A stretch of 64,000 bases of DNA, from positions 97,340,001 to 97,404,000 of the forward strand of contig CM075977.1 of NCBI GenBank assembly GCA_038087875.1, written 5' to 3'. How positions within the stretch are numbered: position 1 is the first letter of the stretch; each line of letters starts with the position of its first letter. Shown here in pieces: positions 25,401 through 31,400 of the stretch. The stretch is from Malacoraja senta (Eukaryota). The notes under the pieces are model-generated. The model saw nothing but the letters and a program-made list of their open reading frames with translations. It was not told the DNA's origin and did not search any database. A program made the position numbers and the translations under genes.

Positions 25401-28400
25401 AGACTAGATGAAACCTGCAGATCTGAGCTTTAGACTTGCTTCTAAGTAACAGATCAGGTGTTTTCATTATTTGGTTTGTTCAAAATTGTTCTTAAACTGA
25501 GGGACATGCATCTGTCACTTGCATATCATCATCCCGTTCAATTTGTCTTTGAAGTATTTCAATTTAACAAGGTCATCTGAAATGTTGTGATTTTGAAGCC
25601 AGTGAAGTCTAAAATACAAGAGTTGGGATATTGCGTTTCCACTTTATAAAACACAAGTTCAACCACACTTAGGAATATTGTGCACCATTTTCTGGTCAGC
25701 ATTAGTACCATCTTACCATCCGTAGACTTTCTAATCCCAATCCACAACCAATTCCCATTTTCTGTTAAGGCAATTGAGCCAGTTCCTTACAACTTGTGGT
25801 ATAGTTTGCAGCTTAATAGGACCCAAAGTAAACATTTTTTTGTTAATATAGCGAGGGAAATGGCCATGTCCTCCCTTGTTATAGTAATCATCTTCACCAA
25901 GTAATAAATCAGCCATCACAAAACACAAATTTTCATTATTAATCCTTTAAACCAATTCGTAACCTTGAAATTTGGCATTTCCTTATCCTGATTTAATAAC
26001 AAAAACTTTTATTCAAACTCTAACATCCTCCTTTTGCCTATTGAAAGAAAAAAATTGAACACACTGGAATACCGGCCCCGGTGTTTAAAACCAGTTTTCA
26101 GTAACATACTTACAAAGAATATTCTTCTCTTAACCTTCTACGATACTGCTTCTTTGGCTTCATTGTGTGGAAATATGGTAGTTTAATCACATCAGGCCAC
26201 ACTGCCGGACATGGGCTACCGCAGATTCGGCTGTCAGAAAAACAAGTTATTGGATGAAGCACAATTTGTTTTCCAGCACATTATTACATTATCTCATTAT
26301 GTCTCCTCACTCTTGTGCATCCAAAAATGCAAATTATATTCAGTCAAATTTTGTTGGATCCAAACATTTGTTCTCAGTGGTAAATACAATGTCACCCCCG
26401 TTGCTTGAACATGGCTGACACACCGTATACAGTGGTAGTTACATCTATGACCAGTTCCTTTGGTGTATCATAGGTTAACTGCCATCTACTGCCAGAGACC
26501 TTGACTTAACAGTTGAAACCTTGAAAAATATAGACCATGAAAACCTATATGCTACAAATAGCTCTCTTGACCTTGTCAACGACGACGAGAAAATCCTAGG
26601 AGGTGAAACTGGGGTGTTCTCTTCAGACAACCAGTCACAGAACTGAAACACTTTTTCTTTCCACAGACGATCTTTTGGCACTGCATGACCTGCAGAGTTT
26701 CTCCAACATTTTTGGGTCGTTTCAGATTTACAGCATCTGCAGCCCTGATTTTCATTTACCGTTGCCTCTTCTGATTGTTATGTGAACAGGGACAGTTGCA
26801 GAACAAGTAATTGATTATACCTGGCATTCAGCCATGCAGTAATACTCTCCTGTAAATAATGGTTTCACTGGATTCCTCGTTCCTAGATAAATCCTACCAA
26901 GATTTCATTGAGGGGGAATTCTGGAGAAAATTATGTAGATGGTAATTATATTCTGGTAGGTTGAGGTGATGCTACATACTTTCTTAGGTCATTACTGTTT
27001 AGAAGGTCATCCTATTTTCTAGAGATATTCACACAATTTGTTTAAAGCAACATTGAAGCAGTGTTAACATGTGTTTTTTGCTACCTTGTGTTTTCCCCTC
27101 AAGTCAACTGTCAAGCAGAGATCATAAAAAGGACTTGAGCATTAAACATTGCCAGATTCCTCTGGTCCACAACATTCATCAACAATCAGACCAAATTTAC
27201 TCAGAGCAATGCTGAAATGCATTCAACATCTAACTGGGTGAAGCTGGTCTCCTGGACCTACTGTGCTGCTTTATTTTTTGAGTAATCAGATTCCAGTTTT
27301 TTTCAGAGCAACTTCCTACGTGGCCAGAGATGATGGAATACCTGCCCTTTTAGCTCTTTCCTCACCATCCAGAGACCCAAACAGCCCTTCTAAATGAAGT
27401 TGTAATTCACTTGAATATCTTCAAATTTAGCGTATTGAATTGGGTGGTCTCCTCTACACTGAAGAAACCAAACAAAGATTAGCTGAAAGATTGAATCTGC
27501 TGAGCATTTCCATCATTCTCTTTATGGTTTCAGTTTCAATACGCGAGTTCGGTATTCCGAAAAAGGCAAGGGTCGTACGCTAAAAATAAAAATTGAGCAA
27601 AGCGCTGTAGAGTCAGTGAGTATAGTTTGGGTCAGATTTTTTTTGTCTTTTTTCAGTGGGACATTTTGGGGGGGGGGCAGAGACCGGGGGGAGGGGTGGG
27701 CGGAGACCTGGCGCGGGGACGCAAGCGCTGCCAAACTGCCACTGGACTGTCCCCGGTTCCCCCCTCCCTCCACCCCCACCCGACTGGACACCGGCCCCCA
27801 GGCCCACTGCCAGCGCGGAGAAGCACCAACCCCAGCTCACCTCCGCCTCTCCGACAGCCCAGTCCGACGACACCAGCAGCCCCAGGCCCACAGCCAGCAC
27901 GGAGAACCCACAGGCCCACAACCAGCGCCAACTCCAGCCCAACCTCGCTTTAACTCCAGAGGAACCCGCTCCCCGATGTGACGCAACGGCGACGTGCCAG
28001 TTCGCCCATGGCCTGGCCGAGCTGCGCTCCCTCAGCCGCCACCCGAAGTAGAAGCCGTACCTTGCACACCACCGGCTTCTGCTCCTACGGTACCTGCTGC
28101 CACTTCGTCCACAACCCCGAGGAGGAGCAAGGGCCCTGGCCTCGCCTGCGCGCCAGCCTGGGCTCGGCCTCCTCCGGCCCGGCGCTCTACTGGGCCGCTC
28201 TGCGGGCAGCCTTCAGTCCCGACCTGGAGTTGGAGCTGGCGCGGACTCTGGGCTTGGGGCTGGGCAAGGGAGGGGGAGGAGGTTGCTGCTGCCGCCAGCA
28301 CCACCAACAGCACCAGCAGCTCCAGCGGGCGCCCAGCCTGCCCGCAGGCTCTCTCTCCGACGAATCCAGCAGCAGCGGCTCCGCGTCGCCCATCTTCGAG

Positions 28401-31400
28401 CAGGGCCCTGGCTGCACATCTTCAACAGGATCTCTGTGTCGGACCGAGGGGAGTGGGGGCGGAGGTGGAGGGCTGCAGAGCCAACCCGGCGGGACAGGCA
28501 GAGCCAAGCTGGAGCCAGCGGCTGCAAGTCCAGGGCCACCCTGGACACCTCCGGACAGGAACAGGACACCAGGGACGGCCCAGCAGCAACTCAACAGCAC
28601 CCGCAGCGACGGAGTGCCGGGCCCATCGAACACGGACGAAACGCAAGCCTGCACACAATGCAGCACCAGTTGCCAAGACTGTTTATAGCTAGTGACCTAT
28701 GACCTGGGCATGCGCAGTCGGAATACCGAACTCACTTATTCCAACTCGCATTTCAAAGCTTTACCATGATACTTTGTTCCTTCTTGGTTATCAGTAAGCT
28801 ATAAACCAAACAGTAACTGAATTTTGATCTTGCTCTATCCCTTTGACCTATGCTGTCTTCACCCCCCCCCCACCTTCTCTGCAATTTACCCAAATTCCTC
28901 TTTTCTGATGGTGCCTTCCATGTGAAACATTAACACCTTTTCCATAGATGCTGCTCCGTCTGATTTCTTTGCAACATTTTCTGCTTTTACTGCACGTTAT
29001 GTGGATGCTTTGAAAAACACTTCCCTTCAGTCCACAAGATTGACTCCAAGTTTCCAGTTTCATATCACTTTTAGTTGATCTACCTCTCTTTTGCCATTTT
29101 ACAGTGTTCCACGAAGCCCTATCCGAGCTTAAGGAGCAGCATCCAAGTCAGCATGTGATATACTCATGATGTAACAATGAATTCAAGGTTTTCTGACAAC
29201 TACCTTTTCCAGTATGTATCAACATTGTCCAGTTCTGAACACAGGTCAAACAATAAACAACTTTTTACTCCTCCCTCATCTGCAATTTAAAACATCTGAT
29301 TCTTTGGTTTCCACAGTTCTGAAGTAAAGAGAAAAGAGAGCCCATCTTGCCGAGCATTCCAGCATTTTTTTTTTCAGGTTTTCAACATCCGCAATTCTTT
29401 TACTGTCCACTTCAGAAAAATGGTGTTTATATTTGTCAACCATTTGTTGTTCTAAAGAACCAATTAATTACATGAACCAGAGACTGAACTAACAAGTTTT
29501 CATGTTGCCTTAAGGCAACGATGTTATTGCATCTTGCACACAAGCATCAGTAATTGTGGATAGCTTGCATTTTGCACACCATCTTAATTCTTTAGCAGAT
29601 ACTGAAGACATAGGGACCTAAATATAAAGCACATTTGGCACTTCTAAATCAATACTTGCATTCCGATAAAGTCAAACATTATCAACCTCAGGTCTGTAAG
29701 AAAAGAACAAAGTGAGAAATGTAGTTTTGCCTTTAGCATTGAGTCCATTCACAATGACATGATGACTATCAAATAGAATAGTAAGTAGTAAGCCTAATGG
29801 TGCAAGCATGAAATCAGTGCAAAACGGCAATTTAGTTTATTTTAATGGACCACCTCATCCAAAACATGGATGCCCGAGCTTCAGATTTGACAGACTGCAA
29901 ACAAATTGGACTCCAAGCCAAGATTTATTCAGCAATAAGGAAACAGTACAAAAGAACCATTCTTTCCAAATAATCAGGCCCATGAATCAACATGAACTAA
30001 TCAGGTTAATGCAAATATGACTCACTTTTAAGGTTTGCAAATGTCAATAGATAAATATTATATACATTAAATATTAGCCCATTGTGATTATCATTATATT
30101 AAAATAATTTTCTCCCGAATAATTTCACTACATTCTAGGGGTTAATTCATGGCAAAAACAGGCATAATTGCAAATAATGTGAAGATTCATTTTTACAGCA
30201 AAGTTGAATATCAACACCTACCTGATCAATTCCAGCTGAGCTAGTTCTTGGTTTGCTTGGAAGATTGGCTTTTTAGTAAACAACTCACCCAGAATACATC
30301 TGTACAAAATAAAAATAGTTCTAAACATCGACATGCTTTTGTTCATTTATACGACAAGAAAATGCTTTTCAATACAACTTTCCTGGTAGTGTTAAATAAA
30401 GTGCCTACCCACAACTCCACACGTCTATAGCTGGTGTATATCGTTCTTCTCCAAGCAAGAGTTCAGGTGGCCGATACCAGAGGGTAATAACTTTATTTGT
30501 GTAAGGACGGCTGCAATTAACAAACAGAAAATGAATCAGAACCTCCAAATTCTAAATAACTTAAAGATGAACAAACTAAATGGAGACCTCAATGACATAA
30601 ATAAATCTAATAGCTTTGTTTCCTCAATCAATGCCAGCCAACCTATAAGATTTAAAATTCATTAGATCCTCTCACACCACGTGTATGCATATTTTGTACA
30701 TCCGCCGACAGAATGTAGAAAATATGGGCATGAATGCTGATCGTTAATTTTGATGACAATAATAAACTAAACTAGATGAATTTTCAGCAGACATCCTGTG
30801 TCTCTCACCATCAATATCAAAACCATGTGTTCAATTTTCTTTTTTGTTGCTCTTAAATATAAATTCTATTAAGTATGCAAACTCATTTTAAATCTTAAAA
30901 GAGACGATCTTTTACTATACTGCACATCTATATGGTATGTGATGAGAATCCTGACACCAAATGCACAATCTTGCTTACATGCCCATTGACCCACTGCATC
31001 AGTCTTATTATTAACTCTATGAACTATCTTATGGAACTTAACCTTTTAGTTCTAACTAGTCTGTTATAGTCATCCTCTTTCTACCAACTTGTCGGTCGTT
31101 TGTTCCCAGAGATCCATTACTTTTACATACCCAATCGTTTACAGACATATTTTCACTGCGTGGTAGAGTTGGGCCAAATAGCCTACTCCCGTTCCTTGCT
31201 CCTTTCACTATGTCAAACAATGATGGGAGCCTATAATCTGCCTTATGAGATCTTGCAAAGACAATTTGTAAAATTAAGTTCGGTGCAAACACTGAGAACT
31301 TAATCTCAGTTAAAGAACTGTAGAATTTTGAAAATAAGAGTTTAATAAATTTATCTTATAGAACATCAGCTTCGACAGAAGCCTACCCATTTTTTGTATT

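Follow-up and report, generated by a model that had tools for sequence, protein, structure and literature searches.

A decayed, multicopy transposon-like element carrying a ZFP36-family gene fragment in a CDK13-like intron of the skate Malacoraja senta

A 1.2-kb element at positions 27538-28740 of a 64-kb stretch of Malacoraja senta CM075977.1 (the window, to which all positions below refer) carries part of a ZFP36-family gene between short terminal inverted repeats (TIRs), inside an intron of a CDK13-like gene. We consider it very probable that this element is an old and decayed copy of a non-autonomous TIR transposon, belonging to a skate family of the Pack-TIR kind in which one capture of ZFP36-family sequence was followed by transposition. 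The initial annotation of this DNA had suggested that a derivative of a DNA transposon captured a gene fragment and possibly amplified it, and it had named a single-copy fragment as the outcome that would speak against this proposal. The fragment was not single-copy. Amplification within a DNA-transposon derivative was borne out by contigs that bridge the internal junction, by a shared right end and by unrelated flanking sequences.

The copy number was surveyed with Logan contigs of four public runs (X1, X3, X8 and X22, the last of which is shallow), placed on positions 26400-29900 at a likeness of at least 80%. X1 belongs to the window's own species, and two of its long contigs match the flanks of the element without any difference. 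In the unique intron flanks, the summed contig depth was 28 in X1, 28 in X3 and 70 in X8. Over the five bins of the captured segment (the cargo) it was 9,400-25,500 in X1, 5,300-8,500 in X3 and 6,600-22,200 in X8, which in order of magnitude is 100-900 times the single-copy depth in three species. The right terminal bin was the deepest, reaching 99,000 in X1 (about 3,500 times single copy), 80,000 in X3 and 144,000 in X8. Each cargo site was also covered by 32-74 distinct contigs per run, a count that is independent of depth. The junction between backbone and cargo at 27979 was bridged by contigs that differ from the window copy by 10-14% (records 12, 25, 26 and 27). At the right end, matching stopped after 28740 in 180-236 contigs per deep run (X1, X3 and X8) and in 27 contigs of X22. 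About 60 more contigs per deep run ended on either side of 28740, so that about 300 per run left the element at 28739-28741, and those leaving there ran for up to 255 nucleotides (nt) into unrelated AT-rich sequence. Taken together, the contig counts, the shared junction and the differing right flanks are what is expected of a single loaded element that has spread to many sites.

A one-off pseudogene that happened to lie between chance inverted repeats, or in a miniature inverted-repeat transposable element (MITE) that is otherwise free of cargo, has next to no chance of being the correct explanation. After testing, nothing spoke for it except that no target-site duplication is visible at the window copy. 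Against it stands the depth of the cargo bins, which exceeds that of a single copy 100- to 900-fold in three species, together with dozens of variant contigs and shared junctions. The repeats themselves are also poor candidates for coincidence: the 17-nt core of the inverted repeat, searched with up to three mismatches, occurred in the 64 kb only as the two arms, with 0.03 chance matches expected.

The 1.2-kb island and its 23-nt inverted repeats, both reported in the initial annotation, were recovered in our analysis (Table 1). GC (guanine plus cytosine) content was 0.61-0.70 over 27660-28740, compared with 0.38 in the flanking intron DNA; it was 0.39 for 27538-27659 and 0.61 for 28472-28740. 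The two arms, 27538-27560 and 28718-28740, paired at 21 of 23 positions. A repeat finder lengthened them to 29 nt at 86%, and the family contig data showed that the outer six bases of these longer arms are due to chance. The left arm probably begins one base sooner, at C 27537. Within the left GC-rich backbone we found direct repeats at 27796-27834, 27880-27918 and 27908-27946. The first two were 82% alike, in agreement with the short internal duplication noted earlier near 27796 and 27880. The number of repeat units differs among copies, as some contigs had a joint stepping back 87 nt; Tandem Repeats Finder did not call the duplication within 27660-27978 as a tandem array. The GC-rich backbone is open in all six reading frames, and neither 27660-27978 nor 28472-28717 had a blastn match in the 14-kb donor locus described below. 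These two backbone segments may also be of captured origin. A Pfam search of three forward open reading frames of the element gave no domain above the curated cut-off and nothing resembling a transposase; it returned sub-threshold noise only, because the zinc fingers are broken. No second copy of the TIR, the backbone or the cargo was found within the window, and a search of 26000-30000 against Rfam gave no RNA family.

Table 1. Features of the element and of its host intron (window positions)
Feature	Position	Strand	Evidence and remarks
Left terminal inverted repeat	27538-27560	+	Pairs 21/23 with right arm; contig depth rises from 28 to >20,000 in its bin
Left subterminal backbone, AT-rich	27561-27659	+	T-runs and a run of G; deep in all runs
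GC-rich backbone with imperfect duplication (spacing about 84 nt)	27660-27978	+	GC 0.70; origin not in donor locus
Cargo: pseudogenised part of last exon of a skate ZFP36-family gene	27979-28471	+	blastn, 82% to donor locus 7538-8080
In-frame stop TAG	28049-28051	+	Donor TAC (Tyr of KYKTE); alignment to donor locus
CGA in place of donor TGA stop	28445-28447	+	Alignment to donor locus; private to window copy
Right backbone, GC-rich	28472-28717	+	No match in donor locus; deep; many length variants among copies
Right terminal inverted repeat	28718-28740	-	Pairs with 27538-27560; family end at 28740-28741
Downstream host exon, CDK13-like	~26122-26232	-	Six-frame motif search
Upstream host exon, CDK13-like	~30224-30298	-	Six-frame motif search; neighbouring kinase exon fits CDK13 best in PDB

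The identity of the cargo was established by protein and nucleotide comparison. A 236-codon open frame across the block gave five protein matches, all of them batoid ZFP36-family proteins of 278-299 residues, and the top match was a protein of Rhinoraja longicauda annotated as 'ZFP36L2-A-like' (P0001). We therefore used as donor locus the 14 kb around the gene that encodes P0001 (L001), which comes from a related species and not from the window's own. In this gene, a first coding exon of 39 nt is followed by an intron at 6040-7225 and by a second exon that starts at 7226. When window positions 27300-29000 were compared with the locus by blastn, there was a single match, over 543 alignment columns. 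The cargo begins at CRYGDKCQFAHG of finger 1, 312 nt into exon 2, which is the last exon, and it ends 24 nt beyond the donor stop codon. It thus lies wholly inside exon 2 and spans the middle of finger 1, the linker, finger 2, the CNOT1-binding tail and 24 nt of 3′ untranslated region. The earlier reading of a ZFP36-family sequence running from the end of finger 1 through finger 2 to the C-terminal motif is in line with this match. That motif, previously interpreted as the CNOT1-recruiting tail, is described in two papers as the family's CNOT1-interacting motif (PMC9476947, PMC8180021). The conceptual translation of the cargo, with X at the breaks, showed 85% identity to the skate protein.

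In a tree of 36 family members, built by maximum likelihood, the cargo and two skate proteins formed a clade with a Shimodaira-Hasegawa-like approximate likelihood-ratio test (SH-aLRT) value of 99, inside a batoid clade (99). The source of the fragment was therefore a host gene belonging to the skate lineage. The initial annotation had called for a tree to find the donor gene; such a tree nested the cargo with skate ZFP36-family genes but did not pin down a single paralogue. The zinc-finger domain of the donor protein fitted the solved structure of TIS11d (130 bits) better than that of TTP (113 bits). The Tis11B_N domain, carried by the ZFP36L1 and ZFP36L2 controls, was missing from the donor protein, and its automatic names (ZFP36L2-A-like and ZFP36-like) conflict. 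On these sequence comparisons, the donor is best described as a skate ZFP36-family gene whose vertebrate paralogue is ambiguous. The last 35 residues of the donor protein had no match in a search of the PDB, perhaps because that search leaves out very short chains. The TIR core was not present within 6 kb of the donor gene in its locus.

Compared with the donor locus, the cargo had 50 substitutions in 493 aligned bases and seven deletions, with no insertions. The deletions removed 2 nt after 27993, 11 after 28053, 6 after 28149, 3 after 28303, 21 after 28341, 6 after 28358 and 1 after 28407. Frameshifts resulted after 27993 and 28407, and the 11-nt deletion, which lies in the KTEPC codons and corresponds to the loss of about 10 nt reported before, took out the start of finger 2. 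The stop where a tyrosine is expected and the CGA at the stop position, both also remarked on before, appeared in the alignment as changes from donor TAC and TGA. The in-frame stop, the seven deletions and the altered stop codon mark the window copy, judged from its sequence, as dead.

Several of these lesions were not shared by the rest of the family. Nearly all other contigs had G, C and T at 27979, 27981 and 27985, restoring CRYGDK, and all of them had T at 28445, as in the donor TGA. In X1, 23 contigs carried on after 28407 with the donor-like codons GRRLPIFSRIS. The AA that is present in the donor after 27993 was carried by only about 17% of the depth. As these two bases are so rare in the family, the frameshift at this point must be old in the family, and the cargo has probably been non-coding from early in the family's history.

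The age of the family can also be judged from the divergence of its copies. Among the X1 contigs, 310 were at least 99% like the window copy, 1,061 were 95-99%, 1,830 were 90-95% and 1,034 were below 90%. Most were thus 90-99% like the window copy, and the other runs were similar. The family was abundant in three species that differ by about 5% in unique intron DNA, so the burst of amplification was old. We also noticed that the termini were several times more abundant than the cargo, the right end about fourfold. In organisms B and C, two of the other species, 36-47 contigs quit the left end after 27571 for a common other sequence, and dozens of contigs joined the right end at 28667-28691 from other sequences.

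The wider distribution of the termini bears on another explanation, under which the unit would sit inside a bigger repeat that holds a ZFP36-like segment, for instance a long autonomous transposon or a block resembling a satellite. One sister subfamily has only about the first 34 nt of the left end in common with the unit, and the roughly fourfold excess of the right end over the cargo implies that the termini are those of a wider family. The orthologous locus, moreover, differs beyond the element in two species, with 27350-28866 affected in one of them. However, most contigs leave at 28740-28741, which is the boundary of the inverted repeat, and enter unrelated AT-rich sequence, and in the window the 1.2-kb unit is flanked by single-copy intron DNA. 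We give this explanation very little credence. An outer repeat made up of 27350-27537 and 28741-28866 and hosting the element was also considered and was dropped, there being no other copy of these flanks in the window. The depth to the right of 28740 was raised because one or two bases of the very deep TIR fall in that bin. There was also a moderate, unexplained rise in depth in 27336-27452.

We propose the following history. From the last exon of a host ZFP36-family gene, an ancestral element would have gained about 0.5 kb, beginning in the middle of finger 1 and ending 24 nt beyond the stop. Template switching or gap repair at the level of DNA, the route proposed for animal Pack-TIRs (PMC8277862), most likely brought the segment in. 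The loaded element would then have been mobilised in trans, by a transposase encoded elsewhere, to hundreds of copies. The cargo would have been a passenger: an early frameshift in the family would have been followed, in the window copy, by the stop, more deletions and the loss of the stop codon. The window copy would be transcribed, if at all, only within the CDK13-like pre-mRNA.

Capture at the DNA level, rather than through complementary DNA (cDNA), is most likely. Alternatively, an existing MITE might have received a piece of processed ZFP36-family cDNA and then been amplified with this load. The cargo is indeed exon-only and contains no intron, an observation also compatible with DNA capture since the cargo comes from one exon. 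Retrocopies mediated by long interspersed elements (LINEs) are truncated at their 5′ end and not at their 3′ end. The truncation on the 3′ side of the cargo is the opposite of this pattern. Furthermore, there was no poly(A) tract at the 3′ junction, where only 24 nt of 3′ untranslated region are present, and no target-site duplication was found around the cargo inside the element. A retrocopy origin of the cargo is thus unlikely.

The ends of the element were used to assess its superfamily. The initial annotation had offered an alternative reading of the termini as 19-bp TIRs with a TA duplication, and this found no support at family level: the likeness among family members extended 2-3 nt past the TA, the main break came after 28740 in all four runs, and no listed break lay after 28738. 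Such a duplication (TA at 27540-27541 and at 28737-28738) would be of the Tc1/mariner type. Skates are reported to be rich in Tc1/mariner elements, and DNA transposons are reported to be unusually abundant in them (PMC12361510). Just past 28740, the consensus in four runs was G, followed by TAA or TTA. There is a hint here of PIF/Harbinger, as this G-TWA right flank and the C at 27537 would fit a 24-nt TIR with the TWA duplication of PIF/Harbinger. Non-autonomous elements of PIF/Harbinger share short TIRs and AT-rich insertion sites with the skate family. In contrast, their TWA duplication was not seen at the window copy.

Five points weigh against a transposed Pack-TIR family. First, the summed Logan contig depth is a rough proxy, good to an order of magnitude, and the tool itself warns that it is not a copy number. 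Second, both termini and the cargo were seen together in one copy at the window locus alone, and no full-length sister copies with both ends were recovered. Third, no target-site duplication was recognisable at the window copy: TTT precedes C 27537 and CAA follows 28741, where TWA would be expected. Fourth, no autonomous partner was met, the source genome and repeat libraries not having been searched. Fifth, the presence or absence of an intron cannot discriminate DNA capture from cDNA, the cargo lying within one exon.

Elements of this kind have been described in animals. Tan et al. 2021 (Nat Commun 12:4280, PMC8277862) reported 370 Pack-TIRs in 100 animal genomes. Only four of these were multicopy (three in frog and one in alligator), and their copy numbers were low; the two frog cases that are described had three and five. 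The cargo of multicopy Pack-TIRs was biased to GC-rich sequence, and an intronless copy of a multi-exon parent was excluded from the survey as a retroduplicate. Its main text makes no mention of cartilaginous fishes (PMC8277862). The skate family resembles animal Pack-TIRs in being a non-autonomous TIR element that holds a fragment of a host gene, in having an unlinked parental gene and a GC-rich cargo, and in its dispersed copies. It differs in number: the multicopy Pack-TIRs of that survey have few copies each, whereas the skate family has, in order of magnitude, 100-900 cargo-bearing copies in each of three species.

Pack-Mutator-like elements (Pack-MULEs) of rice and maize also capture gene fragments and amplify them between TIRs, with a GC-rich and pseudogene-like cargo. 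The skate family shares these properties. However, it is without signs of Mutator (long TIRs and a 9-bp duplication are both absent), has only one identified cargo fragment and resides in a vertebrate host. For Pack-MULEs, small-RNA cross-talk with the parent gene has been proposed (10.1101/777037).

A comparison with the ZFP36/TTP genes themselves (TTP, ZFP36L1/TIS11b and ZFP36L2/TIS11d) showed that the cargo keeps the end of finger 1, the linker, finger 2 and the CNOT1 motif, and that it is without the N-terminus, the first half of finger 1 and the first cysteine region of finger 2. These genes have two intact C-x8-C-x5-C-x3-H fingers; the cargo has a stop and frameshifts, and its Pfam zf-CCCH score is below threshold.

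In our full-text literature searches, no publication on the capture of a ZFP36 gene or on a comparable skate family came up. The kind of element is already known in animals, and the skate family is notable for its copy number, not for its mechanism or function. In animals, capture of gene fragments by cut-and-paste transposons is regarded as rare, with nearly all cases in single copy (PMC8277862). The occurrence of a coding fragment at hundreds of skate loci means that the plant-like route of capture followed by amplification can run at scale in a vertebrate. The many replicate copies are useful for dating, for following the decay of CpG-rich DNA and for studying small-RNA cross-talk with the parent gene.

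The GC-rich part of the element also has an unusual CpG content. The observed/expected ratio of CpG was 0.54-0.67 in its three GC-rich segments and 0.1-0.28 in the flanks (the short AT-rich left end is not comparable). With these values and its GC content of 0.61-0.70, 27660-28740 satisfies the classic definition of a CpG island. In the cargo, 8 of 45 donor CpGs had turned to TG or CA. This suggests a CpG loss below what is expected for methylated neutral DNA of such age, and we have no explanation for it.

It might be asked whether the family functions as RNA, with sense and antisense transcripts giving rise to small RNAs that would cross-regulate the parental ZFP36-family gene. The window copy and the coding sequence of the donor orthologue still have exact runs of 40, 35, 25 and 23 nt in common, the window copy lies antisense in a transcribed gene, and the CpG ratio is kept well above that of the flanks. 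Nevertheless, the sole RNA-labelled run behaved like DNA, and the copies decay as neutral DNA, by stops, frameshifts and deletions. There is, by analogy with plants, a very slight chance of such a role. It is conceivable, with a similarly slight chance, that hundreds of CpG-rich copies with stretches identical to the parental coding sequence, many of them in introns and in either orientation, feed the PIWI-interacting RNA (piRNA) or small interfering RNA (siRNA) machinery and so link the silencing of the family to the dosage of the parental gene. If this were true, it would be a vertebrate counterpart of the conflict between Pack-MULEs and siRNAs in plants. We saw no sign of a function of the family.

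The host gene was identified from CDK12/13-type kinase exons on the minus strand of the window. A kinase exon gave its best score among solved structures with CDK13 (130.8 bits), compared with 126.7 bits for CDK12. The element lies inside an intron of about 4 kb between the two host exons listed in Table 1. Since the host gene is on the minus strand and the cargo on the plus strand, the cargo runs antisense to the host gene, in agreement with the initial annotation. On the minus strand at 61070-62299, in a block with a GC content of 0.70, there is also an open frame of 409 codons with many Arg, Ser and Pro residues; the first coding exon of the CDK13-like gene, with its CpG island, probably lies here. 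There is an assembly gap at 41262-41461.

The orthologous locus was recovered from organisms B and C, in one single-copy contig each. The contig of organism B contained the element from 27536 to 27763 and then jumped to 28881. In that of organism C, 27349 was joined to 28867, with 56 other bases between them, so that 27350-28866 was absent. The right breakpoints in both organisms were at the C-run 28861-28874. The simplest reading of these differences is an old insertion with later deletions in those lineages, and a more complex insertion history could also account for them.

Two other repeat-like features were seen in or near the same region. About 100 nt in the same intron (26634-26750) had depths of 6,965, 4,584 and 19,064 in the three species, compared with 28, 28 and 70 nearby, which makes it a very high-copy repeat. 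At 24525-25216, inverted repeats of 67 nt (24525-24591 and 25150-25216, 88% complementary) surround a GC-rich interior with a GC content of up to 0.61. Inside this element-like structure there is a near-perfect hairpin of 43 nt, at 24940-25034.

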